Notes under the pieces: generated by a model
The model's database searches: none
The model's input: only the letters and a program-made list of their open reading frames with translations
Told to the model about the DNA's origin: nothing
Program-made: the position numbers and the translations under genes
Assembly: GCF_018350175.1 (NCBI RefSeq)
Contig: NC_058375.1
Location: 17,050,001 to 17,114,000, forward strand
DNA: 64,000 nucleotides
Source: Felis catus
Lineage: Eukaryota
Direction of reading: 5' to 3'
Shown here: positions 15,173 to 42,926 of the stretch, in pieces
Numbering within the stretch: the first letter of the stretch is position 1
Layout of the letters: each line of letters begins with the position of its first letter

Positions 15173-15283
15173 CTAGCCGGTGTGGGCTCCTAGAGGCATC
15201 CAGTTCCACTCAGGGGGCTGAGAAATGGTTACCTTTCTCTTGGCATCCACAACCTTCTTTGGCAGCTGGAGACCATTATCAGT
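15173..15283 (-). CDS. Candidate spliced uORF, 37 aa: [40 protein letters not shown] supplied by 42820-42822.
   Basis: Joining ...TAAATG| to |ACTGATAAT... gives 36 more sense codons, then TAG (15175-15173) 8 nt before the LUZP1 ATG. Depends on the predicted junction. Confidence 0.55.
15229..15276 (-). CDS. Candidate short u[18 protein letters not shown] in the LUZP1 leader
   Basis: ATG at 15276, in-frame ATG at 15246, TAA at 15231-15229. Out of frame with LUZP1. Confidence 0.35.
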   Translation of the reverse strand: MVSSCQRRLWMPRER

Positions 15284-15300
15284 CTATAGAAGGAAAGCAG

Positions 15301-15649
15301 ACATACACAATGGAATATTACTCGGCAATCAAAAAGAATGAAATCTTGCCATTTGCAACTACGTGGATGGAACTAGAGGGTATTATGCTAAGCAAAATTA
15401 GAGAAAGACAACTATCATATGACTTCACTCATATGAGGACTTTAAGACACAACAGATGAACACAAGAGAAGGGAAGCAAGAATAATATGAAAACAGGGAT
15501 GGGGACAAAACATAAGAGACTCTTTATATAGAGAACAAACAGAGGGTTGCTGGAGGGGTTGTAGGAGGGGGGATGGGCTAAATGGGTCAGGGGCATTAAG
15601 GAATCTACCCCTGAAATCATTGTTGCACTATATGCTAACTAACTTGGAT
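15301..15649 (+). mobile_element. Carnivore/felid L1 3'-end fragment, no polyA tail, TSD GGAAAGCAG (15292-15300 and 15650-15658)
   Basis: ORF2 terminus (MEYYSAIKKNEILPFATTWMELEGIMLS) plus carnivore L1 3' UTR. Confidence 0.9.
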
Positions 15650-17115
15650 GGAAAGCAGAAAGCATGTCAGGCAGCAAATCCAATTATCTGTACTTCAGCT
15701 CCCAGTTGTTAACAGACCTCTCGTATTAATTCTTGTGCCTAGAACATAGCAGGTGTTCAAATTTGTTGAATGAATGAATTTTAATAAACCTGCAGAAAAA
15801 CACTGGTTTTTCTTTATGACTGATGTTGAGGTGATACCTAGTTTCATCCTAATGAAGAATGCTACCAGTGGCTGCATGGCAAAAAAACACAGAAGAATAC
15901 CCCACTTCTCATGGCAAGCTCTAAGAATCTCTTTACCATCTGCCACCTACATAATGTCAGGAGAGTCATCTCAGGAGAGTAACAGCTCCAGTTTTACTTA
16001 GTTGTAAAATGGGTATAATAATCCCTACCACATCTCTCCCCATTATCATTCGGAGATAATGCATAGAGCTCTAGGTAACAAAGCAGTAAATAATCCTAAA
16101 ATTATTAAGAACTACAACAGCTTCAGGGAAAGAAGTAGATTAGTGAAAAAAAGTCACCTCACTGACACCAGGGAGATAAAAGGACCTAGGCTCCGTGAGG
16201 GGAGAAACAAAAGGGTATATCCCTAGAGAACGTATAATCTTTGGCCTGCCTTCACTTGAGTTCAGAGTTCAGATTTACACTGCCTTGAGGGGTCTGATAC
16301 CAACTTCTCCTCGCAGAGAATCTAACCAAAAATGGTCTCAGCCTGGTAAAATCCCTGGGAAACCTACCAGAGGTAAACAAAAATACTCTGGAGAGAGAGA
16401 CTCTCTACCAAGGTCACATAAGAGTCCCATAGATAAAGTCCTGTTGAACCTGAGTTTACAATTCTAAATTACAAAACACAGAAGGACCAATCTTTTACTA
16501 TGACTGAACAACAGGCATTTACACCAGTAAGAACCAAAGTTAGTAAGACACACTAGAAACTGTAAGTACATTCCAATGTTTAAAGTCATAAAAGAAGGAA
16601 TCAAAACCAGGAGACAAGAAAATGGTATCAACAAAGATCAGAAGATTTTTAAATTAACCAAATAGAATCGCTTAGAAATGGAAAGAAAAATGGCAAATTA
16701 GATGCAAATGAAAAGAACGCAGTATTTGAGAAGAGATATAAGGAGATTACAAAAGGTAGCACAAACTTAAAAATTTTGTGAAAGAAAGGTTAATAGGGGG
16801 AATAAAATACAGAGGTCCAAAAATGAAGTTTTAACAGGTGGCCCAAAAGGAAGAACAGAGAGAATGGGGGAGAGGCAGAACTACTAGCTAAGTATTTTTC
16901 AAGAGTTGATGAAAGGGAGCCTCATATTTAGGAAACAAAGTCCCAACCAAGCAGGGTAAAAGTTAAATCTGCACCTGGACACATGATAAGGATACAGCAG
17001 AATACCACAAAGAGAAGAGAAGCAACAAGAAGGAAAAATATTCTATGAAGAAGTAACAACTGAACTGGCTTCTCAACAGAAACTTAAGTGTCAAACAGAA
17101 GACAAAAGACAGGAT

Positions 17116-17241
17116 GGGGCACCTGGCTGGCTCAGAGCACGCAACTCTTGGTTCTCAGGGTTGTGGGTTTGAGTCCCATGCTGGATGTACAGATTACTTA
17201 AAAATCTTAAAAAAAAAAAAAAAAACAAAATAAAACAAAAA
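17116..17241 (+). mobile_element. Short-type Can-SINE
   Basis: tRNA head without a (CT)n body, long A tail. Confidence 0.8.
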
Positions 17242-17248
17242 AACTAGA

Positions 17249-17447
17249 GAGGTGCCTGGGTGGCTCAGTCAGTTAAACATCCTGAAGACTTCAGCTCAGG
17301 TCATGATCTTGTGGTTCACGAGTTCAAGCCCTGTGTCAGGCTCTGTGCTGACAGCTCAGAGGCTTGAGCCTACTTCGGATTCTCTCTGCCCCTCCTCTGC
17401 TCACACTTGGTCTCTCTCTCTCTCAAAAATAAACAAACATTAAAGAA
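17249..17447 (+). mobile_element. Can-SINE
   Basis: Head, (CT)n tract, tail. Confidence 0.9.
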
Positions 17448-17449
17448 CT

Positions 17450-18115
17450 TATCAAAACAGTATGAAGGTTCCTCAAAAAGTTCCTGCCCTACGATCCAGC
17501 AACTGCACTACTAGGTGTGTATCCAAGGAATACAAGTGTGCTGTTTTGACGGGGCACATGCACCCCAATGTTTATAGCAGCGCTATCGACAATAGCCAAA
17601 GTATGGNNNNNNNNNNNNNNNNNNNNNNNNNNNNNNNNNNNNNNNNNNNNNNNNNNNNNNNNNNNNNNNNNNNNNNNNNNNNNNNNNNNNNNNNNNNNNN
17701 NNNNNNNNNNNNNNNNNNNNNNNNNNNNNNNNNNNNNNNNNNNNNNNNNNNNNNNNNNNNNNNACTAGAGGGTATTATGCTAAGTGAAATAAATCCGAGA
17801 AAGACAAATATCATATGATCCATTCATATGTGGAATTTAAGATACAAAACAAATGAATATAAGGGAAGGGAAGCAAAAATAATATAAAAACAGGGAGGGG
17901 GACAAAACATAAGAGACTCTTAAATACAGAGAACAAACAGGGTTGCTGGGAGGGGCTGCGGGTGAGGGGATGGGCTAAATGGGTAAGGGGCATTAAGGAA
18001 GACACTTGTTGGGATGAGTGCTGGGTGTTACACATAAGGGATAAATCACTGAAATCTGAAATCATTGCACTATATGCTAACTTGGATATAAATTAAAAAT
18101 ACATTTTAAAAATTA
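17450..18115 (+). mobile_element. Carnivore L1 3' end (contains N-run 17607-17763)
   Basis: ORF2 terminal motif (MFIAAL..IAK; LEGIMLSEI) and carnivore 3' UTR. Confidence 0.85.
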
Positions 18116-18120
18116 AAACT

Positions 18121-18294
18121 GGACACCTGGGTAGCTCAGTCGGTTAAGGGTCCCACTCTTGGTTCCAGCTCAGGTCATGATCTCATGGTTTGTAAGTTTG
18201 AGCCCCAAGTCAGGCTCTGTGCTGACAGCGTGGGATTCTCTCACTCTCCACCCTCCCCCCCGGCCCCCCACTCTCACTCAAACTTAAAAAAAAA
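18121..18294 (+). mobile_element. Can-SINE
   Basis: Head and tail recognisable. Confidence 0.85.
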
Positions 18295-18437
18295 GACAAA
18301 AGACATGGTAATATCTTTATGAAAGAAGGTACAATTGAACACTTTTCAGAACACAAAGGAAAATAAAAACCTAAGTGTTTACTATTAACAGACTTTCACT
18401 GAAAAAACTATTTATGGATGTAATTCAGAATATAGAT

Positions 18438-18547
18438 GGGGCACCTGGGTGGTTCAGTCGGTTAAGCATCTGACTCTTGATCTCAGAGTCATGAGTTCCA
18501 GCCTTGTGTTGGGCTCCACGCTGGGGGTGGAGCCTACTCAAAGGAAA
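18438..18547 (+). mobile_element. Short-type Can-SINE
   Basis: TSD agaatataga. Confidence 0.85.
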
Positions 18548-18844
18548 AGAATATAGAAAATGATCACTTAGGAAAGGCATGAGATGCAAGAAGAAACAGT
18601 AAGCAAAGAAATCAACCCAAACAAGCATTGGTTCAGTTAAACAATAAACAAAAATTAACTGGGAGTGGGAAGGGGAAGGGCAGGATAAAACCAAAGTGGA
18701 ACTACCTGAAATGGTAGATAATAACATGTTAAGTCCTAAAGAAGGAAATCAGAATTCAAGTGTTCTTAAAACTCTGTATTTTGAAGGAAGAGGATAGAAT
18801 TATTATAACTTTAGACCTTGGTAAGAGTAGATATTAATAATATA

Positions 18845-19705
18845 TCTGATAAGGCATCAATAAGCAGAGTATATATAAAGAACTCCTACAACCTAACAAA
18901 AAACAAACAACATGATTAAAAACTGGGCCAAGGACTTGAATAATTGATCCAAAGATGATACCCAAGTGACCTACAAGCATACGAAAAGATACCCAACATC
19001 ACTCATCATTAGGGAAATGCAAATCAAAATCACAATGAGATATCACTTCACACCCATCAAGATGGCCACTATCAAAAGAACAAGTGGTGGTGAGAATATG
19101 GAGAAACTGGAACGCTTGTGCACTGTTGGTGGGAAAATAAAATGGCAAAGCTAAACAGTATGGCAGCTCCTCCAAAAATTAAAAATAGAATTACCGTATG
19201 ATCCAGCAATTCCACTTCTAGGCCATACTATAAAAAAATTCAAAACAGGATCTTAAAGAGATAATTTGTACAGCTATGTTCATGACAGCACTATTGCAAC
19301 CAAGTGTCTGTCTATCAATGGATGATGGAGACACAAAATGTAGTATACGCTACAGTGAAATATTAGCCTTAAAAAGGAGACCTGGATGAACCTTGAGGAC
19401 ACTGTGCTAAGTGAAACAAGCCAGTCACAGAAGAGAAATAGTATATGATTTCACTCATATGAGGTATCTAGGAATATTCAAATTCAATTAAACACAGTAG
19501 AATGGTAGTTGCCACAGGCTGGGGGAGGGGGAAATGGGAGTTACTGTTTAATGGGTATGGAATTTCAGTCATGCAAGATAAAAAAAAAACTGTTCCAGAG
19601 ACTGGTTGCACAACAATGTGCAAATATATACTTAACCCTACTGAACTGTAAATGGTGAATATATCTTATGTTACGCATTTTTTACCACAGTTTAAAAAAA
19701 AATTA
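18845..19705 (+). mobile_element. Older L1 (L1MA/MB-like) 3' fragment
   Basis: ORF2 end (SLIIREMQIKITMRYHFTP) plus an L1M-type 3' UTR. Confidence 0.8.
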
Positions 19706-20565
19706 AGGGAGGAGAGAAGTAAAAAGCACAGAGAAGGTAGGGCAGATTTCCCACTTCTGGTCCAGAAATGCAAATGTAAAAAGCTTAGAAGTCATCACTC
19801 TGTGTCTTAACATATAAAAAACTGAACAGACTGAAAATTCACAACTCTTCTTAGGTCCATGAGAGAAATGAGGTCACAAAAACCACTTCCCTAAAACTTA
19901 AGACAAGTGGATGCAAAGAATCAACAATTTACAAAAATAGAAATTCACCAGTAGAAACCTCCATGGGAACCAGCAGCAGGGTAGGAAAACCTAAACTGCA
20001 ATTGACAAACTGCTGGAGGCTCAGTGTGGACAACTCTGAGAGTTAAGAACAAGAGGGAGTCTGTGTTAGGGGGGGATGCCCCCCATTTGGTGAGCTTTAC
20101 CTCCATGAGTTGAACGAGGTTCTCACAGTGAAGATGAGAGACTTCCCCCGCCCTGTGCATCCAACAGGGGAGTGTTAAATCAACCATTTTGAAACCAGAA
20201 CGTGGGGGGAAGGGAAATCCCCAATTCCTGCTCCCTCCAGCCATCCTGTACCACCTGAGGTATGGGAGGTTGGGAGGAGAAGGGAAAAAGGCTATCACTA
20301 AAGGCCTACTTACCTCAGTTTTTTTTTTTACCCAGGACATCATGTCCTGCTTTCACCAAAAAAAATCATAAGGCATACTAAAAGGCAAAAAATAGTTTGA
20401 AAAAACAGAGCAAGCATCAAAACTGGACTCAGAAATGGCAGATGTTGGAATTACCAGAAATTTAAAATACCTACTGCGATAAGGGCTCTAACGGAAAAAG
20501 TAGTCACCATACAAGAACAAATGAGTAACAGAAATGGAAGTTCTAGGAATCAACAAAATGTTACA

Positions 20566-20751
20566 GGCACCTGGGTGGCTCAGTAGTTTAAATATCCGAC
20601 TTTGGCTCAGGTCATGATCTCGTAGTTCATGACTTCCAGGCCCATATCCCTGCTTGGGATTCTCTCTCCCCATTTCTCCCCTCCCCAACTAGCACATGCA
20701 TGCACGCTCTCCCTCTCTCTCAAAATAAATAAATGGAAAAAAAAAAAAAAC
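20566..20751 (+). mobile_element. Can-SINE
   Basis: Head and tail; tail-to-tail with the next SINE. Confidence 0.9.
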
Positions 20752-20757
20752 CACGTT

Positions 20758-20969
20758 TTAATTTTTAAATTTTTTTAAATATTTATTTTTGAGAGAGAGA
20801 GCACAAGCAGGGGAGGGGCAAAGAGAGAGGGACACAAAGAATCTGAAGCAGGCTCCAAGCTGCATGCTATGAGCACAGAGCCTGATGTGGGACTCGAACT
20901 CACAAACTGTTGAGATCATGACCTGAGCCAGAGTCAGATGCTTAACCAACTGAGCCACTCTGGTGCCCC
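20758..20969 (-). mobile_element. Can-SINE
   Basis: Reverse-complement SINE ending ggtgcccc. Confidence 0.9.
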
Positions 20970-21646
20970 GAGACCATATATTTTTTAAAACAGAGATCAA
21001 AAATACTGTTACAGCAATGAAGACTGCCTTTGATTATCTTATCAGTAGACTAACAGAACTGAGTAAAGACTCTCAGCTTGAGGGTATGTCAATAGAAACT
21101 TCCAAGCCTGAAAAGTAAAGAGAAAAATGACTAAAAAAAAGGGAACAGAACATCCAATAAGTATGGGACAACTACACTTGTAATGGGAATTAACAGAAGA
21201 AAAATTTGAAGCAATAATGACTGAAAATTTTCCCAAAATTAGTGTCAGACACCAAATAACACCAAGCAGGATAAATGCCATAAAGACAAAAGAAAAACAA
21301 GAACCCAACACCTAGACATACCATATTCACACTGCAGAAAATCAAGGATAAAGAAAAAAATCTTGAAGCCCAGGAAAAAAAACACAACCTACAGAGTAGC
21401 AAAGATAAGAATTCCATCTGACTTCTCAGAAGTCATGCAAAGCAAGAAGAGAGTGAAGTGAAATATTTAAAATATTGAAAGGTAAAACAACAAAAACCCC
21501 AAACTACAATTCTGTACCCCACAAAAAAGAAAAAAAAAATTCAGTACCATTTCAAAAGTGAAGGAAAAATAAAGACTTAGACGAATAAAAATTGAGATCT
21601 GCTGCCAGTAGACCTGCCCTGCAAGAAATGTTAGAAGAGTTCTTCA

Positions 21647-21836
21647 GGGACATCTGGGTGGCTCCGTCGGTTAAGCGTCTGACTCTTGACTTCAGCTCAC
21701 GTCATGATCTCACAGCTTCATGGGTTTGAGCCCTGTATCGGACTCTGCACTGGCAGCATGGAGCCTGCTTGGGATTCTCTCATTCCTCTCTCTGAGAGGA
21801 TGTCTCTATTTCTCTCAAAAATAAACTTAAAAAAAA
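21647..21836 (+). mobile_element. Can-SINE
   Basis: TSD ttcttcag. Confidence 0.9.
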
Positions 21837-22138
21837 TTCTTCAGTGAGAAGAAAAATGATATGGATTAAAAACTCAAACCACATCAAGAAAGGAAGAGCA
21901 TTAAAGTTAAAGTAAAATAACATTTTTAATTTTTCTTACTTTTAATTGATCTAACAGATAATTCAAAATAATAGCAACAATGTATTCAATTGTTATACAG
22001 CTTATGTATAAATAAAATGAATGACAGCAGTGATACAAGGGACAAGAGAGGAACTAGAAATACTTTATTATAAAGTATTTGTACTACCTATAAATGTACA
22101 CTACAAACTCTAGGGCAAACTCTTAAAAAAGTTTAATT

Positions 22139-22358
22139 GGGGGCACCTCAGTGAGCATCCGACTCTGGCTCAGGTCTCAATCTCGAGGTTGCTGAGTTTG
22201 GAGTCCGCATGGGGCTGGCTCTCTGCTGTCATCACGGAGCCCGCTTTGGATCCTCTGTTTCCCTCTCTCCCCGCCCCTCCTATGCACTCTCTGGCGTGCA
22301 TGCTCACATTCTCTCTTTCTCTCTTTCTCAAAAATAAATAAGCATTAAAAAAATAATA
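22139..22358 (+). mobile_element. Can-SINE with an internal head deletion
   Basis: TSD aagtttaattg. Confidence 0.85.
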
Positions 22359-23083
22359 TAAGTTTAATTGATATGCTAAGGAGAGAAACTGGATCCATAT
22401 ACAATGCTTAATTATAACCACAAAAGGCAGGAAAAAAAGCCAAAAAGTAACAAAAAACAAGAGCTTATAATCACTTTAAACATCAACAGTCTAAATATAC
22501 CAATTAAAAGAGAGAGAGAGTATATCAAAAGACACGACTGTATGTTTACAGAAACCCCCTTCAAATTTTTTTAATTTCAGTATAATTAATGGACAGTGTT
22601 ACAGTTTCAGGTGTATGATATAATGATTCAACAATAGTATGCATTATTTAGTGCTCATCCACTTTAAAATTTTAATAAAGATGCATAATGATTAAAAGTA
22701 AAGGGATGGAGAAAATTTTGCCATACTAACTAATCAAAAGGAAGTTGGACTAGCTACATTAATATCAAGACCGAATATTTCAGAGCAAGTAATCACGGAT
22801 AAAGACAGACTTACATGATGATAAAGGAGTCTCAATTCTCCAAGACGTAACCATCCTTAATGTGTATGCACCTAACAAAGAAGCATCAAAAACCAATAGA
22901 ATTGCAAAGAGAAACATGAATCTATTACTATAGCTGGAGACTTCAGCACCCCTCTTTCAGGAACTGACAGATCCGGCAGGCAGAAAATCAGTAAGGACAT
23001 AGTTGAAGTCAACAATGCAATCAAGAAACTGTATATAATGAACATATATATAGACTATTCATCCAACAACAATAGCATACACA

Positions 23084-23160
23084 TTCTTTTCTTTTTTTAA
23101 TGTTTATTTTTGAGAGAGAGCAAGCAGGGGAGGGGCAGAGAGAGAGGAGATACAGAATCC
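23084..23160 (-). mobile_element. 5'-truncated Can-SINE (tail only)
   Basis: ttttttaatgtttatttttgagagagag...acagaatcc. Confidence 0.75.
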
Positions 23161-23369
23161 ATAGCCAGTAGCGTTCACATTCTTAAGTTCACATGGAACA
23201 TTCACCAAGAGAGACCACATTCTGAGCCATAAGACACAACAACTTGAAGAACAGAAATCATACATTGTATGCTCTCAGACCACAATGGAATTAAACTAGA
23301 AATCAATACCAGAAAGATAGCTGGAAAATGCCCAAATATTTGTGGAGATTAAACACACTTGTTTTAAAA

Positions 23370-23563
23370 ATTTTTTAAATATTTATTTATTTTTGAGAGA
23401 GAGAGAGAGAGAGAATATATGGGGGAGGGGCAGAGAGAGAGAGGGAGACAGAATCTGAAGCAGGCTCCAAGCTATGAGCTGTCAGCACAGAGCCCGATGT
23501 GAGGCTCGAACTCAAGAATCACAAAATCATGACCTGAGCCAAAGTCGGATGCTCAGCCAACTG
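23370..23563 (-). mobile_element. Can-SINE (head runs into an N-run)
   Basis: Reverse SINE body. Confidence 0.9.
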
Positions 23564-24235
23564 NNNNNNNNNNNNNNNNNNNNNNNNNNNNNNNNNNNNN
23601 NNNNNNNNNNNNNNNNNNNNNNNNNNNNNNNNNNNNNNNNNNNNNNNNNNNNNNNNNNNNNNNNNNNNNNNNNNNNNNNNNNNNNNNNNNNNGTGTACCA
23701 AAAGCAATGCTTAGAGGCAAATGTATAGCACCAAATGCATGTATTAGGTAAGAACAAAGATCTAATAGCAATAAGCTAAGCTTCCATCTTAGGCAATTAG
23801 AAAAAGAAAAGCAAATTAAAACCAAAGTTAACTGAAGAGAAGAAATAAAAATTAAAGCAGAAATCAACTGGTTCTTTGAAAAGATCAATAGAATCAATAA
23901 GCCTCTAGCCAGGCTAATGAAGAAAAAAAAAAAAGACAAATTACTAATACCAGTAAGAGGGGCTATCACTACAGATCCCATGGACATTAAAAGAACAAGG
24001 GATTATGAACAACTCTATGCCCACAAATTTGATAACCTAGATGAAATGTACCAATTGCTTGAAAGATATAATCCTCAGGAACTCACACAAGCAGGAAATA
24101 GGTAATCTGAATAGGATTGTATCTATTTAAGAAATGGAATCAATAATAACCTTCAAAAACAGGAAACATACTGGGCCTAGATGGGTTCACTGGTAATTCT
24201 ACCATACATTTAAGAAGTAATTCTATCAATTATAA

Positions 24236-24458
24236 GAGATGCCTGGGTTGCTCCACTGGTGAGCATCCAACTCTTGATTTCGGCTCAGGTCATGATCTCA
24301 TGGTTCGTGGGACAGAGCCCTGGGTTGGGTTCTCTGCACTGAGCACTGACAGCACAGAGCCTGCTTGGGATTCTCTCTCTCTCTCCCTCTCTCTGCTCCT
24401 TTCTCTCCCCCCACTCACAAGCATACCCTCTCTCTCAAAATAAATAAATCAAAAAAAA
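24236..24458 (+). mobile_element. Can-SINE
   Basis: Degenerate long TSD aagaag(t/c)aatt(c/a)ta(t/c)caatta. Confidence 0.9.
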
Positions 24459-24745
24459 AGAAGCAATTATACCAATTATACAATTTTCTACAAATTCTTC
24501 CAGAAGTTAGGAGCAGAGGAAATACTCCTTAGCTCATTCTGAGGCCAGCATTACCCTAACATCAAAACCAGACAAAGGAAAAAAAACCCCACAGACTAAG
24601 ATCTCTCATAAACATAGATGTAAACATCTTACAAAATATTAGCAGATCTAATCCAACACTGTATAAAAAGAATTTCAGACCATGACCAAGTGGGATTTAT
24701 CCTGAGTATACAAAACTGGCTCAATGTTCAAAAATCAATTTATGT

Positions 24746-24932
24746 GGGGCGCCTGGGTGGCTCAGTCGGTTAAGCATCCGACTTCAGCTCAGGTCACGAT
24801 CTCGCGGTCTGTGAGTTCGAGCCCCATGTCAGGCTCTGGGCTGATGGCTCAGAGCCTAGAGCCTGCTTCCGATTCTGTGTCTTCCTCTCTCTCTGCCCCT
24901 CCCCTGTTCATGCTCTGTCTCTCTGTCTCAAA
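24746..24932 (+). mobile_element. Can-SINE (SINEC_Fc-like; tail runs into an N-run)
   Basis: Near-consensus felid SINE body. Confidence 0.9.
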
Positions 24933-25426
24933 NNNNNNNNNNNNNNNNNNNNNNNNNNNNNNNNNNNNNNNNNNNNNNNNNNNNNNNNNNNNNNNNNNNN
25001 NNNNNNNNNNNNNNNNNNNNNNNNNNNNNNNNNNNNNNNNNNNNNNNNNNNNNNNNNNNNNNNNNNNNNNNNNNAAAATGAGGAATAGAGGGAAACCTCC
25101 TCAACTTTATTTAAAAAAAAAAAAATCTACAGCTAGCATCATACTTAAAGGTGGAAAACTGTTCTCTGATCAAGAACAAAGCAAGAAGTCCCCTTACCAC
25201 AGCTTCTCAAAACTGTACTAGAATCCTAACTGATATGGTAAGACAAGAAGATAAAAAAAAAAAAAAAAAAGAAAGGGAAAGAAGAAATGAAACTCTTTGT
25301 TTTGCACAGGACATGATTGTAGAAAACCCAAATGAATCAACAATAACAAAAAAAAATTCCCCAGAACTAATAAGCAACTACAGCAAGAATGTAAGATACA
25401 AAGTTAGCATTCAAAAGTCAGCTGTA

Positions 25427-25622
25427 GGGAGCCTGCGTGACTGGAGTCAGTTAAGCGCGTCTGACTCTTGATTTCAGGTCATGCTCTCACAGTTCAGGAG
25501 ATCAAGCCCTGCATCGGGCTCCATGTGCTGAAAACGAGGAGCCTCCTTGGGATTCTCTCTCTTCTTCTCTCTCTGTTGCTGCATGCATGCTTTCTCAAAA
25601 TAAATAAGCTTAAAAAAAAAAA
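25427..25622 (+). mobile_element. Can-SINE
   Basis: TSD aaaagtcag. Confidence 0.85.
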
Positions 25623-25688
25623 AGTCAGTCTCTTTCCTATATACCAGCAATGAACAAATGGAATTTGCAATTAAAAACAATACCATTA

Positions 25689-25876
25689 GAGGCGCCTGTG
25701 TGTCTCGGTTGAGCGGCTGACTCTTGACTTAGGCTCGGGTCATGAGTTCATGGTTCGTGGGATCAAGCCCTGTATTGGGCCTGCACTGACAGCATGAAGC
25801 CTGCTTGGGATTCTCTCTCTCTCTCCTCTCTCTGACCCTCCCCCTCCCCAAAAATAAATAAACATTTTTTTTTAAA
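25689..25876 (+). mobile_element. Can-SINE
   Basis: TSD aataccatta. Confidence 0.85.
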
Positions 25877-26016
25877 ACAAGAATACCATTAAAAAACACA
25901 CACAATAGCATTTACATTAGCACCCAGCTCCAAAAAAAAAAAGAATTACATAAATATAAACCTAACAAAATATGTACAAGACCTATGTAAGGAAAACTAT
26001 ATAAAACTAATGGATT

Positions 26017-26188
26017 GGGGTGCCTAGGTGGCTCACTCGGTTAAGCGTCCGACTTCAGCTCAGGTCATGATCTCACAGTTTGTGAGTTCAAGTCCCGCAT
26101 CGGGCTCTGTGCTGACAGCTCGGGGCCTGGAACCTGCTTCTGATTCTGTGTCTCCCTCTCTTTCTGCCCCTCCCCCACTCATGCTCTG

Positions 26189-31960: not shown

Positions 31961-32039
31961 TCACTGGAAGAGAAAAATAACTGAGAGGCAAGGACCACAG
32001 AATTGTACACTGAAAGCACCACAAATTAACAGGACCAGA

Positions 32040-32250
32040 GCGGCGCCTGGGTGGCTCAGTCGGTTAAGCGGCCAACTTCGGCTCAGGTCATGATCTCGCA
32101 GTCTGTGAGTTCGAGCCTCACGTCGGGCTCTGTGCTGACAGCTCAGAGCCTGGAGCCTGTTTCAGATTCTGTGTCTCCCTCTCTCTGACCCTCCTCTGTT
32201 CATGCTCTGTCTCTCCCTGTCTCAAAAATAAAAACATTAAAAAAAAAAAA
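32040..32250 (+). mobile_element. Can-SINE
   Basis: TSD taacaggacca. Confidence 0.9.
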
Positions 32251-32821
32251 TTTAACAGGACCACAGCTGGAAAAAGTGACATTAAACAAGAAGCTAAAGC
32301 CACTGAGAAATCAGAGGCAATTTGGGGAACTGGGGTGTAAGAAGGTGACAGCAGGACTAAGGGTGCTGGGTGTTATAGTCTGATGAGATTAGATTTAAAA
32401 CTAGGGGGAAAGAGGGGAGGAACGTGGTCTGAGCCATAACAGAAAAACAGCTACCACTTGAAAGAGAATAATGGATTCATCAATGATCCCACAAGAAAAC
32501 ATAGGGCCAAAGGAAAGATTTGTGGAAATGACAAAAGCCACTTGTCTCCAACGCCAAGATCCCTTCTACTGACTGCACTGCAAGCCTACAGCCACCAGAT
32601 GGAACCCATGTACCACCCTTAAAAATACCAAGACCTCTGAGGTTTGGGAAATACAGTCTCCCTCTCTCAGCCTCTGAGATCCTACCCTCTCCCGGATTAT
32701 TTCTCCACCACTTTGCTTCCCTGGATACATCCTTCTCTAACCTCTCATCTTTGCTTCTTTTGGTCTCCCATCCTTCTCTTGCCAGTTTATATGCTTTCTC
32801 ATTCTCAAAAATGGAAGGGGA

Positions 32822-33005
32822 GGGGTACCTGTATGGCCCAGCTAGTTAAGCGGACTTCAACTCAAATCATGAGCTCAAGCTCTGCTTCGGGCTTGCTGCT
32901 GTCAGCACAGAGCCTGCTTCAAATCCTCTGCCCACCTACCTCTCTGCCCCTCCCCAGCTCATTCTCTCTCTTGCTCTCAAAATAAATAAATAAACTTAAA
33001 AAAAA
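32822..33005 (+). mobile_element. Can-SINE
   Basis: Diverged full element. Confidence 0.85.
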
Positions 33006-33016
33006 CTGGAAGGGAG

Positions 33017-33272
33017 AGAAAGATATCATATGTTTACACTCATATATGGATCTTGAGAGACTTAACAGAAGACCATGGGGGAAGGGAAGGGGGGAAGAAA
33101 AGATAGAGAGGAAGGGAGGCAAACCATAAGCGACTCTTAAATACAGAGAACAAACTGAGGGTTGATGGGGGGTAGAGAGAGGGGAAAGTGGGTGATGGGC
33201 ATTGAGGAGGGCACTTGTTGGGATGAGGACTGGGCGTTGAAGCCAATTTGACAATAAATTATATTTTTAAAA
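33017..33272 (+). mobile_element. Felid-type L1 3' end
   Basis: gatatcatatgtttacactc...ggatcttgagagacttaacagaagaccatggggg...gacaataaatt. Confidence 0.85.
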
Positions 33273-35006
33273 AATGGAAGGGGGAAAACCCTAAATTTAT
33301 ATATTTATATAAGAAAAAAAACCCTTTTCCCTTATTCCCATCCACTTTTCCTACTTCAAGTGCCATTTGTTTTTGGCCTTTTGCCTAGTGGTATGGTAAA
33401 AACAAACTAACCAACAAGCAAAACCCTTACCAATCTATACACAGGGTGAAGGAAATAGAGGGCTGAACTAAATACGGGCCATAAACCAATTTTAAAAGGA
33501 TCTGTACTGGCACAGTAATCACTGGAAAACAAATGATATATGATGTGTCCACAAAGTACTTTAAATCAGCTTATCCTTGTAAATATGCTAGAAAGCCATA
33601 AAGTTATACGCTTTAAAGAGATGAACTTTATGATATATAAATTAGATCTCAATAAAGCTGTTTAAAAAAAATCCCAGCTTACCCCAAACTGAAACATTCC
33701 CCTCAGCAACTCTTAGTTATACTAGTTTATACTATAGTTTTCATAAACAAATCCCATTTTCAGAAGAGAGAAATGTTAAACTCTAATATAGTCCCATCTA
33801 TAAATTGTAATTCTGAACTAGCAGAATCCACAAATCCTACTGCTTATTCATTTGGCTTTTAGTGCCAATTTTATATGTTCTGTTCAAAACTCGATATGAA
33901 CCAATCAGTACACCACTAGAAATGGAAAAGCTAAGCCCAGTAACTATACAGCACATACTTACTACAGGTGTGAAGAGAAGGAGTTTCACAAACCACTACT
34001 CAAAATCCTTTCAAAGTACTTATTGCTCTCAGGATAAAGACCAAAGTCCCCAAGAAGGCATGCAAAGCCCCAAAGGATCTGGCCCTGCCTACCTAGTCAA
34101 CCTTGTCTTCAAACTCCATGTGGGCTCCACACTCTTGGAGCCCACAAACTTTGCACTCTATCATCTCCAGGCCTTTACTAGCTTGACTGGTAATCCTTCT
34201 CGTTTCTCCAAATGCCACCTTAGACAATACCTCCTCCTGGAATCTTCTGCAGCAACTTCCTCCCCAAAATTGCAGGGCAAAGCAGGGCTTCTCCTTCTTG
34301 CTTTTACAGTGTGGGCTGTACTGGTCCATTCACAGCACACATCACACTGTATTCGAGTTGTATTTACCCATTTTGTTTCTCCAACTTGTTTCTTATTCAC
34401 CACTGTATTCTCAGTACCCAGCAGGAAGCCTAGTCCATTATTAATGCGTAAAATTTGATGAATGAATGGCTGCATGGCTGGAGCCATTATTAAATGGCTT
34501 ATCGGCTCTTTGGCACTAACCATTAACAGAAAACAATAAAAATGATGTCAACAAGCTACTCATGGATTACAAGGGTGAAAACAATTGGCAGATATGGCAG
34601 CACAGATACCTGGTCCTGTGGTGATGCCCTAAATGACCTCATCCCAAGCCCAGTGTCACCTGTAGAGTCTCAGTCCTGGTGCTTTTCCATTTGAACTTGC
34701 CCTTTTGGGCTTTCAGGTCTATACCAGATCTTTTTCCACTCCTTAGAGTGGGATTTCAGAGCCAAAATGTAGCTAAAAGATCATTCAGTCCACTGGTTTT
34801 CAATCTGGGCTCAGCAAATCCCCTCAGGGGTCATTCGGAGCAGGGGAGAGAACAGGGAGAAGGTTTGAGCAGACTGAGCTTCAGGCTCCTTCTCTCATTT
34901 TCATCAACCAACGCAACCAATTTCTAGCTTTTTAACATACTGGGTTTCCCCAATATGACAGTAAAGAAAGAACTCCACCACTTTCGTTTAAAATAAAACC
35001 ACCTTA

Positions 35007-35225
35007 GGAGGCCTGGGTGGCTCAGTCAGTTAAGCATCCAACTCCTGGTTTCTGCTCAGGTCATGATCTCGCAGTTGTGGGTGCAAGCCCCACATCAGGC
35101 TCCACGCTGATGGCAGGAAGCCTGCTTGGGATTCTCTCTCTCTCCCTCTCTCTCTGCCCCTTCCCTCCCTGCTTGTGCTCGTTCTCTCTCTCTCTCTCAG
35201 AATAAATAAACTTAAAAAAAAAACT
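35007..35225 (+). mobile_element. Can-SINE
   Basis: TSD aaataa(a/g)accacct. Confidence 0.9.
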
Positions 35226-35884
35226 TACAAAATAAGACCACCTATTTGGCCCAATCCCCTTACTTTAAAAATGAAGAAACTGAGATTCAGAAGTAAATAC
35301 TGTGGTTTCTCTAGCAACTCAGAAAAGGTAAGGACTTTAGTCTCTTGACTATCCAGAATTCTTCCCATTGTGCAGAAACACCTGCCTGGAAACTCTTAAG
35401 CATTTTTACAAAGTGAGGAGTTCTGATTATTCACAGACCAATAACAAAAAGGTACAGAGGACAACCACCAATGGAGCACTACTGTACTGTAGACAATATA
35501 TTAAGTACTTAATTCACATGCTTTCTCTCGGAACCTCAGATCTACCCTTTACTTTTTCTTAAATCACCTAAGGCTTTCTCTTCCATACAAGTATGGTAAT
35601 CCCCAGGGATGTAAAGGACTTAGCAGAATGCCTTGCCCTAAGTCACAACAAGCAGTAGCTATTACTATTATTCTATTCAGTCTCCACAAAAATGTTATGG
35701 GATAGGAACCTTTGAACTCCTAATGTCACACAGCTGGCAAGGAGGAAAGCCAGATGTTGAACCCAAGTTTACTTCCACAGTCCACATTATTTTGAGAATG
35801 TTACTCTGTTGGCCAAATCAATAATCTCTGTGCCCCAGCGCCCTCCTCTGAGCAAATGAACAAATACCAACCCCACCTACCACA

Positions 35885-35885
<1 letters not shown>

Positions 35886-35920
<35 letters not shown>
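35886..35920. repeat. (CAA)n microsatellite
   Basis: About 11 perfect CAA units. Confidence 0.95.
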
Positions 35921-36541
35921 AAAGTCAGCTATAAAGGGCTCTGAAAAGTCCTATGCATACCTAAGGTAAGTTTCACCAGGCAAAATCCTCCTAGAAATAG
36001 CCTCTCACTAAAATCAGCCCTTCTGCCCAGAGAAAACAAGAAATTTGATCAAAAATGGAGTTAGAGTGCCACTTTTCTCTAACCTTTTGGCCCTACGCAT
36101 AGCCAGAGAAAGAAATGGCTTTGCTATCTCCAGGACCTCCCACATGCCCTAGTAACAGTATGTTTATCCAGATAAAATTCATTTGTAGACACCTATAGAA
36201 CATCTATGATGCACCTAGCATTTTGCCAAGTGCTATACAGATTATCAAGACCTAACCCTTGCCTTTAAGTCATCAGAAAGAGAGAGCTAACTCTCTTTCT
36301 AGCTGAGTTCCCATTCACATGAGAAAGATACAGCATCAATTCTCTCTCATTCAGGGCTCCTTTCTGCCAAAGTTCTTGAACCCAGTTCCAAATGGCCCTA
36401 TCTAGCATTTTGGAGGCTGGCTCTTCTTCCTGTCCCACTGGACCAGGAAAGTCTGAAATAGAACATAATCAAACTTGCCCTGCCCTTTCCCCCTAACATA
36501 GCTGTCATGATTCACACTTCCTGTTCCCAACAGTCATTGAA

Positions 36542-36870
36542 GATAGGGGGTCGACAAACTCTGTCTTTAGAGTTTGACAGTATCCATCATCATAAGCTAG
36601 GAGTAGAATTGCTAAATCAATATGTGGTACATCTGAAACTAATATAACATTGCATGTTAATTATACTTCAATCTTGAAACGTTTGATAGTATACATAGAA
36701 GTATACAACTTAGTTTAATAGTAAATAGTTCAGGCTTCAGAAGACCCAAGTTGGAGGTCTGTCCTTGTAGCATGAAACAACTGTACACAATGTATGAGCT
36801 GTGTTCCATCCAACTTTATTTACAAAAACAGGCAGTGGGCCCGTGGACCACCATTTGCCAACCCCTGATC
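36542..36870. mobile_element. MER58-like hAT-Charlie DNA transposon, split by a short L1 3'-end insert (about 36600-36690)
   Basis: Ends agggggtcgacaaact... and ...tttatttacaaaaacaggcagtggg...tttgccaacccctg. Confidence 0.6.
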
Positions 36871-38057
36871 AAAGGGAAAATGGGAAGACTATTTTTAAGC
36901 AGCCTTCTCCCAACCATTTCTAGTCACCTGCTTTAAGCCCTTAGACTATCCATGTCACACCACTTCCTCTTGAGCGCTTCTATTTCATTGCTGGGCCTAA
37001 ATTATTTTTCCCAGCATCACAAATTCACGTCTTAGATATGCAAACTTCAAAAGTTAGTAGCCCAAGGAGCACAGAGAGAGATTATCTAGGTGGGAAAGGA
37101 GTCAAAGACCGTCTGTTCCCACCTCCTAGTCAATGCAGAAGGTACCTCACAAGTAGCCATTTAGCTCCTGTTCAAATACTTCTAAAGACGGGAAAGACAC
37201 TCATTTCTTCCCAAGGCAACTCACTCCACCTCTGGACAGCTCCAAGACTTTTTCTTTTTTTTTTTTTAAAGCACACTTAACCACTTGATTACTGTCTCTT
37301 TTTAGTAGAATTTAAGATCCATGAGGTCAGAAACATGGTTTTTCATATCTGTAGCTGTTTTTTACTGCTGTCTCTTCAGCACTTTGAACAGTTTCTGGTA
37401 CATAAAGGGTATAAAATAATTATTTACAGAAAGCAAAGAAAGAAGGAGGGAGGAAGGGAAGAGAGGAGAGGAGGGGAGGGAGACAGAGGGAACAAAACAT
37501 CACTGCATTTGGGGAACTTTAATGCAGCAGGACTGAGTGAAGAGGCACAAGGGGAGGAACAGAGCAGGTAAGGCCAGAGTACAGACAGGGCGCAACATAG
37601 ACACCCTTGAAATCTCACAGCAAGTGCACAGGCTGAGGTGGTGGTGTTTCAGGAACAAGTTTAGGATTGCGCTTTCACCCCTATCCTCTTCCTTCCAGCC
37701 TCCTCCACCCCATTCCCATGGTGAACATCTTTCACAGCAGGACCTGTTCTCTCAAGCTTTTTCAGACAGCCCCCCCTACAACAATATGCACCCCCGTAAG
37801 CTTTGTACACTGTACCCATGATACTTACTTGGTCATATAGCTGTATTCCTCTACTGGGCTCTAAGTTCGGAGAGCAGGGACTGTGTCATCTTTATTTTCC
37901 TGACGTGGGCACTGAATACTGTGATGGAGCAAGGCAGGAACCTTATAAATGTGTGGTAGATTAAATGAAGGTTAAGTCTGACTGTATCCTGTACTGACCA
38001 AACTACACCTAAGGAATTTTCAGATCTGGGTACCACATTCAAGAAAGCACTTAGCCT

Positions 38058-38344
38058 TCTCTCTCAAAAATGAATAAACAGTAAAAAAAATTTTTTTTTT
38101 AAAAAGGCAGCCGGCGGTGGGGGAGGGGAGCGCCTGGGTGGCTCAGTCGGTTAACCATCTGACTTTGGCTCAGGTCACGATCTCACGGTTCGTGGGTTCG
38201 AGCCCCGCGCTGGGCTCTGTGCTGACAGTTCAGAGCCTGGAGCCTGCTTCAGATTCTGTGTCTCCCTCTCGCTCTACTCCTCCCCCACTCATGCTTTGTC
38301 TCTCTCTCAAAAATGAATAAACATTAAAAAAAAATTTTTTTTTA
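38058..38344 (+). mobile_element. Composite Can-SINE insertion (extra tail copy, GC linker, full SINE)
   Basis: All enclosed by a 17-bp TSD aagaaag(c/t)acttagcct at 38041-38057 and 38345-38361. Confidence 0.85.
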
Positions 38345-38517
38345 AAGAAAGTACTTAGCCTTTATGCCAAAGGTTGCAAGTGCAAATGCCAAAGAGATCA
38401 GGCCAATAATGTTAATGATGACAGGGGCCTGGTCACACAATAGCTAATGGGAGATCATGTTCTACTTTTATATGAATCTCTTATATGTAGCCAACTCATT
38501 CAAAAAGGAAATAAAAC

Positions 38518-38737
38518 GGACGCCTGGGTGGCTCAGTTGGTTGAGCATCCGACTCTTGATTCCAGCTCAGGTCATGATCCCAGGGTGGTGGGATTGAGCC
38601 CTGCTTCCAGCTCCATGCTGACAGTGTGGAGCCTGCTTAAAATTCTCTCTCTCTCCCTCTCTCTCTCTCCCTCTGCCCCCTTCCCCTGCTCATCCTCTCT
38701 CTCTAAAAACAAATTAAATAATTAAATAATTAAATAA

Positions 38738-38777
<40 letters not shown>

Positions 38778-38780
38778 ATA
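38518..38780 (+). mobile_element. Can-SINE with an expanded (AATTAAAT)n/(TAAA)n tail
   Basis: Head plus tail microsatellite. Confidence 0.9.
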
Positions 38781-39189
38781 GAACACCCTGTACAGACCCT
38801 CCAAAACATACTACATGCCTACAAGTGGACATGGGAAGCAAATTTGCAAGCTGCTTTGAACAAAGGGATTTAAGCAAGAGAGCAACACAATCAGAACTGC
38901 ATTTGTGAAAGAACATTCTGACATGACAAACTAGGGAGCTATATTACAATAGTCAAGGCAAGAGATAGAATAGGGGCCTGAACTAAGACAGTATCAATGG
39001 GGTAAAGGGGTGGGGGAGGATTTGAAAGATGACCTGGTTAATCCAGTTTTAATAATGAAGCTTAAGACTGCATGAGCTAATCTGGCAGTCACACTACCAG
39101 TGTGTAGTTTCCGTGATTTTTTTTTTAAATAAACTGCTATTAAATCTAATTTTAATAACTTAAGTATAGAACTTATTTCTTACATCTTT

Positions 39190-39410
39190 TGTAGGCAGTA
39201 TGGTACAAAGATTAAAGATTACAGACACTGGAGCCAAACAAGTTCAAACCTTGATTTTGCCACTTACTAGCTACGTGTCCTTGGATAAGTTACCTGACTT
39301 CTCTACGCTTCAATACCGACCTTAAAGGGTTACTGTAAGTGTAAATGAGTTAATACGTGAAGTGCTTAGATAAGTACCCAGTTCATCTTAAGTGTTAAGT
39401 TTTAGCTCAA
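39190..39410 (+). mobile_element. MIR
   Basis: gccacttactagctacgtgtccttggataagttacc core. Confidence 0.75.
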
Positions 39411-40122
39411 ATTATTTACTATTTTTCACACTTTAACTTGAAAGTTAGTTTCAATCAATAGTTTCAATTGTCTAAATATTTCTACACATTCCAGCTTAGA
39501 AACATTCACTGTAAATATGATAGGCACATCTTTTCTGTATCTTCATCCAAATTTATGTTCAAGCAGTTAAACAAAATATAACCAAGAACAGCTATCCAGA
39601 ATGCCACAAAAAACAGCCCCTCTTGATAAACATTGATCCATTATTGATACTTCTACAATACGTGCATGCAAGCCAGCCCAAAATTTTGTCTTGGGATCGC
39701 ATGAGAAAATGTTAAATACCTAATTTTAGCAATTAGGATGTGTTATTTTTGTAGCATATTCCTGACCATCCAGCCTAGAATCTTTTCAAAACTGGATTGT
39801 CCTGATATACATCAAAATGTTATGTAGTAATTATATAGGGGTAGTTTGAGTTTTTTCCCATTAATCTCTACTTTCTATATTTCTAAAATAAACTTGTCCT
39901 GCTTTTATAGTTTAAATAAAATCAAGGCAGAGCTTAAAGAAAACAAAGAATTGTTATCAGTTAACATAACTTACTTAGTGAACACAAGTGGCTTCTAGGA
40001 CACACTGTGTTCTCATCCTTTGCTCAGTCAGTTTTAGAATTTAACCAGGGATCACTGTCAAGTTTCCAATGATACCCTCAAACCCATGTGACCTAGACGT
40101 TAAGTCCAGATAAACAACTCTA

Positions 40123-40320
40123 GGGGCACCTGAGTGGCTCAGTCGGTTAAGCATCCGACTCTTGATTTTGGCTCAGGTCATGATCTCACAATATGTGAGT
40201 TCAAGCCCTGCATCAGGCTCAGCTATCAGCACAGAAACCACTTCAGATCCTCTCTCCCCATTTCTCTCTGCCCCTTCCCACACTTGCACACTCTCTGAAA
40301 AATAAACAAAAACAAAAACA
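40123..40320 (+). mobile_element. Can-SINE
   Basis: TSD aaaca(a/t)ctcta. Confidence 0.9.
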
Positions 40321-40329
40321 TCTCTACAG

Positions 40330-40738
40330 GGAGAATTAGTTGACCATACCTTCAAAATATGTCCAAAATCCATTACTTCCTGGCTATGCACCCTACGACC
40401 CTAGCCCAAGCCATCATCCCTCCCCTAGACTATACTGATCACTGCAAAAGTGGTCTCTACGCTTTACACTGCCTACCTTTCCCCACCTTCCCCCACCCCC
40501 CAGTCTATTCTCCCACAGCAACCAGTCTAAGCCTCTCAAAAAATAAGTCAATTTGGGGCACCTGGGTGGCTCCATCAGTTGAGCATTTGACTTTGGCTCA
40601 GGTGATAATCTCACGGTTTGTGAGTTCAAGCCCTGCATTGGGCTCTCTGCAGTCAGCGTGGAGCTTGCTTGGGATTCTCTGTCCCCTTCTCTCTCTGCCC
40701 CTCTCCTGCTCATGCACTCTCTATCGCTCTCAAAAATT

Positions 40739-40770
<32 letters not shown>

Positions 40771-41340
40771 CCTAAGTCAATTCTTGTCACTCCTCTACTC
40801 TGACTCTCCAGTGGCTCCCCCATCTCATTTAGAATAAAATGCACTCCAAAGGTCTTACACTAGCTCTGAGCACCTACCTACTCTGGGTCCCGCTGCTTCT
40901 CTGCCCTGACTCCTACTACTCTTTCCCTACCACTCCACTGCAGCCACACTGGCCTCCTTGTGAAGGACATGACAAGTCACATCATACATCGGGGCTTTTA
41001 CACTTGTTGCTCCCTCTGCCTGGGATGTTTTTCTCCCAGATATCGCTGGCTGGATTCCTCGCCTCTTTCAGAACGGCTTAAACTGTCACCTCATCAGAGG
41101 CTTTCCCTGATCTTACATAAAGGAGCAATGACCCCAGGCTCCCTACCACTTGACTACCTTACCCTGCTTTTATTCTTCTGGGCACATATTGCCTAGTGGA
41201 CATTATTTATCTACTTACTAGTTTATTTGTATCCAGTTACTGTCTTTTTTTTTTTTAATGTTTCTATCCTTCAGGATACAATCCTTGAGAACAAGGACTT
41301 TTTCTGTTTAGTGCTATATTAGCATTTTGTTTAGAGCTGG
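40330..41340 (+). mobile_element. L2 3' remnant (interrupted by a SINE)
   Basis: ccttcaaaatatgtcc...ctccagtggctcccc...agaataaaatgc L2 motifs. Confidence 0.7.
40555..40770 (+). mobile_element. Can-SINE
   Basis: TSD taagtcaatt. Confidence 0.9.
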
Positions 41341-41519
41341 CTAGCTCTAAGAATTGTACTAAGCATGTAGTTAAGTGGTCAATTTTTACCATCAGAACAT
41401 AAGCCCCAGTATATATAATAAAATACTCTATGTACAATAGGTACGTGTAATGAGTTTTGTTGAAAAAAATGATTACCCGCCCTGTCAAATTCATGAAGTC
41501 TATTAGAAAACATTGCTGC

Positions 41520-41737
41520 TTCTTAACTACAGAGAACAAACTTAGGCTAGCTGGAGGGGAGGTGGGCAGGGAGATGGGTTAAATGAGTGATAAGTACTAA
41601 GGAGGGCACTGTTGTAATAAGAACTGGGTGTTATATGTAAGTGATCAATTACTAAATTCTACTCCTAAAACTAATATTACACTATATGTTAACTAACTAG
41701 AATTTAATAAAAACTTGAGACATACAAAAAAAAAAAT
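41520..41737 (+). mobile_element. Carnivore L1 3' end
   Basis: gagaacaaact...atatgttaactaactagaatttaataaaaactt plus polyA. Confidence 0.85.
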
Positions 41738-42620
41738 TGGTGCTTCAATAAAGAGACTATAACACCATCAGAAAGATCAATGAACAAATGATTGTTCACA
41801 CTACCCACCCAGAAATGAGTGTCATAACCCAGTTCCCTGAGGTAGGAAAAATGCCCCAGGGAAAGGAATAGAACAAGAATCCTGAACCAGTTAACAGGGC
41901 AAGAGTTTGCCTCAAAGTTTCCCACCCCTTTAAGAAGAGCCTGAGCTATATCTAATGTGCCCCTTTCCCAGGAGGGGTCACCCTGACAGTGAGAGGCCTT
42001 GCTGAGATCCCTTTCCTATGTCCCACCACAACCATCCCTAGAACCCAGTTCCCAGACTCATTTTGCAGCTGCCCCATTGCTTTGCCTGTCCAGAGAACTT
42101 TTCTCTAGCTATTAACCAGCTACCACTGGTGACCAAAACCACTAGGTAAGGGCCTCTGGCTATGCACTGTGCGAGCTGTTTCTATTTCATTAGTGCTCTC
42201 CACCTTGGTCAACAACAACCAATAAAATAACTGGCACACAGAATCCAGAAAGGCTAGGAAAAGGAGCTAGTTGTCAATCAAAAGGATCTTTCATTTGTTT
42301 ATTTTGCTTTGCTTTTTAAAGATTAAGTCACTGTCTCAACCAAAAAAAAAGTAACTTTCTCAAAAGAGAAACATTACAGTACAACGAAAATAACCCAGGG
42401 CTGAAATCCAGTCCTCCCATTTACTCCCTGTGTGAACTTGGAAGTTCTTTAACTTCTCCAGGTTCATTTCCTCATGGCAAAAATAACAGCACTCACCTCA
42501 TAAGGCTGGTGCAAATGCTAAGGGAGATAACATATGTCAAACAGGACCATGCCTGGCATAAAGTATTCAATAAGTGGTAGTGAGGCCTATTTCTGAAAGT
42601 TGTTGACCAAATGCAAGGTT

Positions 42621-42650
42621 AGGCTGGCTGGCTGGCTGGCTGGCTGGCTG
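42621..42650. repeat. (GGCT)n tetranucleotide repeat
   Basis: About 7 units. Confidence 0.9.
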
Positions 42651-42819
42651 ATTACATCAGAAAACACATTAAGTACTTAGCACTGTGTTTGGTTCATAAT
42701 AGGTCATCAACAAATATTAACTTTTCTCCCTTTCCTGCAACGCTGCACAAATTGTAGAGACTTCAGAAACCATCCAATTCTATCAGTGTAGCCAGGTTTT
42801 GCTGTACAACCATACTTAC

Positions 42820-42926
42820 CATTTAGGTAATTTAAGCTTTCCGTTAATGCTTCTGGGGGCTCTCCTGATACTTTGCTGTCTTAGAAACAGGCACTCACTA
42901 TCTTTCAATGGCAGTTGCCTCTTGAC
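42820..42926 (-). other. LUZP1: LUZP1 upstream non-coding exon (107 nt)
   Basis: Strong acceptor ctttctgtttatattctgtccag|GTC at 42927/42926 and consensus donor ATG|gtaagt at 42820/42819, in non-repetitive sequence. Assignment to LUZP1 is inferred from strand and position. Confidence 0.72.

Follow-up and report, generated by a model that had tools for sequence, protein, structure and literature searches.

The 5' leader of LUZP1 in Felis catus includes a real non-coding exon, exon 2, which is internal and has an ATG as its last three bases; on its 5' side it is spliced to exon 1, which is GC-rich and lies beyond the window. Transcripts joining exon 2 directly to the main coding exon may thus carry a junction-built upstream open reading frame (uORF) of 37 codons, which is here considered, with a probability of about 0.6, an ordinary lineage-restricted addition to a uORF-bearing leader, its peptide probably not being a selected product. 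Judged from the sequence comparisons below, it looks like a weakly used upstream ORF and not like a conserved microprotein. The window is the whole stretch analysed, 64,000 nt of the forward strand of NC_058375.1 (assembly GCF_018350175.1, positions 17,050,001 to 17,114,000); all the LUZP1 leader features are read on its minus strand (Table 1), and the spliced leader model was searched exon by exon.

Table 1. Features of the LUZP1 leader and the start of the main coding exon, in window coordinates.
Feature	Position	Strand	Basis or remark
Exon 2, 107-nt internal 5'UTR exon of the LUZP1 leader	42820..42926	-	Splice sites read in the sequence, and X1 contig
Last three bases of exon 2 (ATG), proposed uORF start	42820..42822	-	Only ATG in exon 2
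Intron bases of the exon 2 donor (gtaagt)	42814..42819	-	Sequence; X1 contig reaches 42820 and no further
Polypyrimidine tract and AG of the coding-exon acceptor	15284..15302	-	Sequence; a dispersed repeat adjoins upstream
Proposed uORF, 36 codons and TAG, in the 5'UTR portion of the main coding exon	15173..15283	-	Translation
15-codon uORF in another frame, wholly inside the proposed uORF	15229..15276	-	A at -3, G at +4, strong context
Nested 8-codon uORF (MPLGAHTG and stop), same frame as the proposed uORF	15173..15199	-	Sequence reading
Second in-frame TAG, stop of all four relatives (W-Q before it)	15167..15169	-	Sequence and protein comparison
LUZP1 main ATG	15162..15164	-	G at -3, G at +4; in phase with the long ORF 15209..11919

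The acceptor of exon 2 reads tctgtccag/GTCAAG and its donor CCTAAATG/gtaagt. A 172-nt RNA contig from run X1 covers 42820-42928 exactly, without flanking intron, and continues beyond exon 2 as 63 nt of GC-rich sequence, for which no match was found anywhere in the window; the missing intron flank and the continuation into sequence outside the window show that exon 2 is real and spliced to exon 1. Translated in phase, this overhang gives RAGARAGVPE, which resembles the RAGARAGAAE found before TDNG in the pangolin protein P0003 and in P0004, so the overhang corresponds to LUZP1 exon 1. All 6 sampled words of exon 2 are present in 20 runs from 11 studies. For runs X4, X5 and X8, in which exon 2 is indexed, no contig was placed on it, which does not indicate absence, as contigs are dropped by the filter applied. 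The contig terminates exactly at the exon 2 donor and so stops short of the join from 42820 to 15283, where the coding-exon acceptor reads tctatag/ACTGAT (15284/15283). An earlier note on this DNA had predicted a spliced 107-nt leader exon joined to 15283; the exon is borne out by the X1 contig, and the join is a predicted one.

The anatomy that the same note had given for the uORF (terminal ATG, 37 codons, two TAGs and an 8-nt gap) agrees with the letters of the minus strand, and the part in the coding exon translates to 36 residues and a stop, equal to the peptide then proposed minus its first M; in the unspliced DNA a stop codon immediately precedes this part. The first TAG (15175-15173) lies 8 nt ahead of the LUZP1 ATG, and an in-frame stop is present upstream of the main ORF. 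The start context is weak, as had been claimed, with T at -3 of the junction ATG and A at +4 after the predicted splice. Shuffling the 119-nt segment leaves 36 codons open in 18% of trials, so the length of the frame is no more than expected by chance.

Two other uORFs start within the coding exon. The strong-context ATG at 15276 sits 10 nt downstream of the junction ATG in the spliced model and 77 nt from the ATG at 15199, and the two open frames of 15 aa and 8 aa, respectively (10 aa for the latter if the second TAG is taken as its stop). The nested 8-codon frame has counterparts in P0003, ending MLLGAHVGWQ, and in P0004, ending MPLGAHVGWQ. In human LUZP1, a translated uORF1 (10 aa) and uORF2 (16 aa), whose starts are 80 nt apart, have been reported from Ribo-seq and MHC-I immunopeptidomics (Ouspenskaia et al., bioRxiv 10.1101/2020.02.12.945840; PMC9776223). 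They lie in the same gene and, as in the cat, in the stretch of leader directly before the main ATG, and the spacing and sizes fit, the match being one of coordinates and sizes only; the 15-codon uORF is likely the counterpart of the published uORF2, and the nested 8-codon uORF likely that of uORF1. The frame of human uORF1 is that of the cat 37-codon ORF, which starts one exon upstream at the splice-junction ATG, whereas the human ORF starts at an internal ATG. A literature search for a long LUZP1 leader peptide found none, and searches on the leader structure yielded only the two uORF papers.

The relatives compared (P0002, P0003, P0004 and P0006) are proteins predicted from other assemblies and available as protein sequences only, so that changes silent in the 37-codon frame are invisible, and they were picked up as open frames, which brings an ascertainment bias. 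All four have the same frame at 83-86% identity, in ORFs of 57, 73 and 103 aa versus 37 aa in the cat; P0003 is the 73-aa entry annotated as a protein in the pangolin genome. In P0003 and P0004, the coding exon follows directly on exon 1, and in P0002 and P0006 the coding-exon frame is preceded by an unrelated third exon, of which a tblastn search with the upstream part of P0002 found no counterpart in the window. The M-TDNG start is absent from all four relatives, each of which reads through different upstream sequence. They all end in GWQ and a stop where the cat ends in G and a stop, having TGG-CAG-TAG in place of the cat TAG; among the sequences compared, the first TAG thus occurs in the cat genome alone. 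Two further candidates, P0001 (a 622-aa repeat protein) and P0005 (a 408-aa, bacterial-looking cluster mate), were rejected as spurious matches. A word search with P0002 failed to recover P0003, matching nothing but the near-twin P0006, and its blank therefore carries little weight.

Variation is unevenly spread along the frame, with 3 of 19 codons variable in the first half, which overlaps the 15-codon uORF, versus 10 of the 19 codons that follow (Fisher p = 0.038). Of the three first-half changes, two leave the peptide of the 15-codon frame unaltered. The first 20 residues are nearly invariant over the five sequences, which is compatible with constraint on the 37-codon frame as well. The internal M is replaced by L in P0002 and P0006, and a start and stop kept in orthologues, the mark of a conserved-peptide uORF, were not found in P0002, P0003, P0004 or P0006. 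The stable microprotein suggested in the earlier note finds no backing in these comparisons, since no relative starts at the junction ATG, the stop differs and two have lost the internal Met.

Like exon-junction-spanning uORFs in general, the predicted cat ORF has an upstream AUG, a stop near the main AUG and a weak context that suits leaky scanning, and its presence hinges on alternative leader exons, as for other spliced uORFs; the sole oddity is that its start codon makes up the 3' end of an exon. With conserved-peptide uORFs and uORF microproteins (e.g., MIEF1-MP, PMC9776223) it shares partial amino acid similarity across mammalian orders, but unlike these it has no conserved start or stop, its C-terminal half is variable and a second uORF, read in a different frame, overlaps its conserved part.

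The probable reading of the 37-codon ORF as an ordinary addition to the leader suggests the following course of translation. Where exon 2 is joined directly to the coding exon, the junction ATG would open the 37-codon uORF, and under the scanning model most ribosomes would bypass this weak AUG (U at -3, A at +4). The bypassing ribosomes would initiate 10 nt downstream, at the strong-context AUG of the 15-codon uORF, the end of which, 64 nt ahead of the main AUG, would leave room for reinitiation. The minority starting at the junction AUG would terminate 8 nt before the main AUG and be mostly lost to LUZP1, adding a small extra repression. Translational damping by the uORF is a reasonable proposal for LUZP1, whose protein is associated with the cytoskeleton and the cilium, and if the uORF is real and used it would represent one more splice-dependent layer of LUZP1 translational control. 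As it stands, the case is an example of how frequently uORFs are built across splice junctions and of the changes that alternative leader exons bring to them.

The strongest competitor, though unlikely, is that the uORF is hardly present in vivo, exon 2 being either a minor or cassette exon left out of most transcripts, or one joined first to an exon between 42819 and 15284; such an intervening leader exon, possibly in a masked stretch, would place other sequence after the junction ATG. The leaders of the relatives speak for this possibility, with exon 1 directly on the coding exon in the pangolin and P0004 and the unrelated third exon in P0002 and P0006, as does the break of the X1 contig exactly at the donor, which is expected at a branch of the assembly graph with several continuations; the six masked intron stretches offer room for such an exon. 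However, the same contig crosses the join of exon 1 (63 nt) and exon 2 unbroken, which argues for dominant inclusion of exon 2 in the X1 sample, and the whole of exon 2 is contained in 20 small contig sets. Its donor (GTAAGT) is also strong, and the 15283 acceptor is obligatory for every coding transcript.

A much less probable reading is a relay from stop to start, in which an ORF from exon 1 through exon 2 ends at a splice-made TGA overlapping the junction ATG (A-TG/A) and ribosomes reinitiate on the 37-codon uORF in spite of its weak context. In the phase set by exon 1, the 35 codons of exon 2 are indeed free of stops, ending TG/A, and the exon 1 ATG opens exactly the relay phase in the pangolin and the species of P0004; however, the cat exon 1 is outside the window and its relay start codon is only putative, about one random case in five should stay open for 35 codons, long uORFs are known to allow little reinitiation, and the relay is a post-hoc observation. 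Slightly more doubtful still, and very improbable, is a basic core with a W-x-W motif acting as a functional module translated in many mammals from differing upstream exons. None of the five sequences interrupts the frame between the exon boundary and the stop, the identity and N-terminal near-invariance are as given above, the pangolin genome annotates one such ORF as a protein, and MHC-I peptides have been reported in human from the 10-aa uORF of the same frame (bioRxiv 10.1101/2020.02.12.945840; PMC9776223). Against this, the N-terminal parts of the relatives are unrelated or only weakly alike, the start is not conserved, the stop is shifted in the cat, the internal Met is missing in two sequences and the C-terminal half changes freely, whereas the conserved block coincides with the strong-context 15-codon uORF, in which two-thirds of its changes are silent. 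A Pfam search gave no family above noise, the human caller reported only the 10-aa ORF in the 37-codon frame, and the matching sequences are open frames by ascertainment. The two ideas can be combined, the leader module (...WxW...LGAH) being translated in many mammals from any spliced-on exon and reached in felids through the exon 1-exon 2 ORF and the TGA/ATG overlap. This combination is given a similarly slight chance; if true, a splicing-dependent relay would set LUZP1 output along with an alternative small protein.

The outcomes of practical use are the confirmation of exon 2, the identification of exon 1 through the pangolin and other transcripts, and a first TAG that is missing from the four relatives. 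The six N runs between the exon pieces are all intronic (15284-42819; 129-185 nt each) and touch neither piece, so the exon pieces and the 37-codon frame are unaffected; these runs could conceal alternative exons. The N run in the coding exon (14953-15092) preserves the LUZP1 frame, the ORF listing having a single ORF, 15209..11919, which shares its phase with the ATG at 15164. The dispersed repeat next to the coding-exon acceptor has further copies at 17764-18000 and 33024-33184.

The LUZP1 leader contains a true exon 2, the 107-nt segment, and its sole ATG, read on the minus strand, is formed by its final three bases. All six words sampled from this exon were present, by index search, in 20 runs from 11 studies and three organisms; the contig sets of most of these runs are small and transcriptome-like, and none of the 20 is recorded as RNA. 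The contigs of four of these exon-2-bearing runs were aligned on 41700-43330, and a contig was obtained from one of them (X1). This 172-nt contig matches 42820-42928 exactly, with zero differing letters and the intron absent on both sides, and carries beyond exon 2 a GC-rich overhang of 63 nt, which has no match anywhere in the window. On the minus strand, the overhang (including two ambiguous bases) has the 3' end …CCTGAG and translates in phase 0 to RAGARAGVPE; in two independent predicted proteins of other mammals, …RAGARAGAAE immediately precedes the frame of exon 3. This match indicates that the overhang corresponds to exon 1 of LUZP1, which is located outside the window, consistent with the lack of a GC rise upstream within it. 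Exon 2 with 150 nt on either side is single-copy within the window. SINE-like short repeats, with more than 20 copies in the window, flank the region (40112-40294, 40539-40772 and 43336-43554).

The X1 contig terminates exactly at the exon 2 donor, short of any join of 42820 to 15283. The simplest reading of this end is a branch of the assembly graph, that is, more than one continuation, and the predicted join is plausible. Exon 2, read in the phase that exon 1 sets, is open across all 35 codons (42822-42926, minus strand) and ends TG/A, and the predicted join with exon 3 makes a TGA overlapping the junction ATG (ATGA). An ORF running from exon 1 through exon 2 and ending at this splice-made TGA is a competing reading of low probability. 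On the upstream side, the acceptor of the coding exon is adjoined by a dispersed repeat (15372-15603), with further copies at 17764-18000 (85%) and 33024-33184 (75%).

Features of the LUZP1 leader and coding exon in the window
Feature	Position	Strand	Sequence context	Frame	Remarks
Exon 2	42926-42820	minus	acceptor …tctgtccag/GTCAAG, good; donor …CCTAAATG/gtaagt, strong
Junction ATG	42822-42820	minus	-3 T, +4 A; weak	a	ORF of 37 codons
Main LUZP1 coding exon	start 15283	minus	preceded by tctatag
ATG 15276	15276	minus	-3 A, +4 G; strong	b	ORF of 15 codons to 15229, 64 nt before main ATG
ATG 15199	15199	minus	-3 T, +4 C; weak	a	ORF of 8 codons nested in the 37-codon ORF
First in-frame TAG	15175-15173	minus			ends 8 nt before main ATG
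Second in-frame TAG	15169-15167	minus			downstream of first TAG
Main LUZP1 ATG	15164	minus	-3 G, +4 G	c	24 N-terminal residues read in translation

The earlier note, which proposed a uORF starting at the junction ATG, had correctly read the letters of the exon 2 end, donor and TAGs; its peptide, without the first M, is recovered by translating 15173-15283 (minus) up to a stop, and the distance of this stop from the LUZP1 ATG, the second in-frame TAG and the weak start context are all as it described. The sequence observation is correct and exon 2 is real. The anatomy of the uORF is nothing above chance: when the 119-nt segment is shuffled behind a terminal exon ATG, 18% of the shuffles keep the frame open over 36 codons, and uORFs are frequent in mammalian leaders. 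Under a scanning model, most ribosomes would bypass the junction ATG and initiate at 15276, just 10 nt downstream, and those using the junction ATG would translate 37 codons and stop 8 nt short of the main ATG, which disfavours reinitiation. The net effect expected on LUZP1 would be a small added repression.

The 36-aa exon-3 piece had no Pfam match. An exhaustive protein search with it gave three real matches and a later word search a fourth, these predicted proteins being P0003 (73 aa; NCBI KAI5139145.1, Manis pentadactyla genome annotation, evidently misnamed), P0004 (103 aa; one assembled contig of 7.9 kb), P0002 (57 aa; two assembled contigs) and P0006 (57 aa; 24 assembled contigs). All four have the exon-3 frame, at 83-86% identity to that of Felis catus, and are in the database because their frames are open. 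In each, the frame continues upstream of the exon boundary via sequence other than exon 2: P0003 and P0004 join exon 1 directly to exon 3, and P0002 and P0006 have an unrelated exon, rich in lysine, of which the window contains no counterpart. The start and stop of the proposed uORF are not conserved, as none of the four begins M-TDNG and all end GWQ (MLLGAHVGWQ in P0003, MPLGAHVGWQ in P0004), past the position of the first TAG. This shared ending implies that the others have TGG (W) at the site of the first TAG, with the second TAG as their common stop, and partly answers which TAG is ancestral: among the five sequences, the second is common to the four relatives and the first is in Felis catus only. 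The nonsense change at 15173-15175, seen only in the Felis catus genome among the sequences compared, shortens the frame by two codons. The internal Met is L in P0002 and P0006. Of the first 19 codons 3 vary, versus 10 of the 19 that follow (Fisher p = 0.038), in a comparison of proteins only, where changes silent in the 37-codon frame are invisible. The conserved half is exactly the stretch overlapped by the strong-context 15-codon uORF, and two of the three changes within this half are silent in the frame of that uORF. KAI5139145.1 is named Adenylate Cyclase Type 7, but it is the LUZP1 leader ORF (exon 1 plus coding exon), and the entry is probably an annotation artefact. Another protein, P0005 (408 aa, bacterial-looking), shares a 90% cluster with the 57-aa leader ORF P0002, which looks like an oddity of the protein collection.

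In human LUZP1, Ribo-seq predicted two uORFs that were also detected among MHC-I ligands (bioRxiv 10.1101/2020.02.12.945840); a review table gives their lengths as 10 and 16 aa and their start-to-start distance as 80 nt (PMC9776223). The in-exon ATGs of Felis catus are 77 nt apart, compared with 80 nt in human, and their ORFs have 15 and 8 aa (10 aa if the latter is read to the second TAG), compared with 16 and 10 aa. This fit of spacing and size, together with the endings of P0003 and P0004, suggests that the 37-codon ORF is an upstream extension of the human uORF1 frame, the match being one of sizes and coordinates; the human caller gave only the short form in this frame. The predicted 37-codon uORF has a weak context, does not exceed chance and lacks a conserved start and stop, and a better explanation for the conserved core of the leader is the short overlapping uORF that human is already known to have. 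As a uORF it is ordinary.

The window contains eight N runs, each of 129-185 nt. Six of them are within the intron (15284-42819), outside both exon pieces and the frame, and could hide alternative leader exons. The run at 14953-15092 is in the LUZP1 coding exon, where the ORF listing gives a single ORF (15209..11919) that spans it and shares the phase of the main ATG (15164); since the reading frame is kept, this run is a length-preserving mask rather than an estimated gap.
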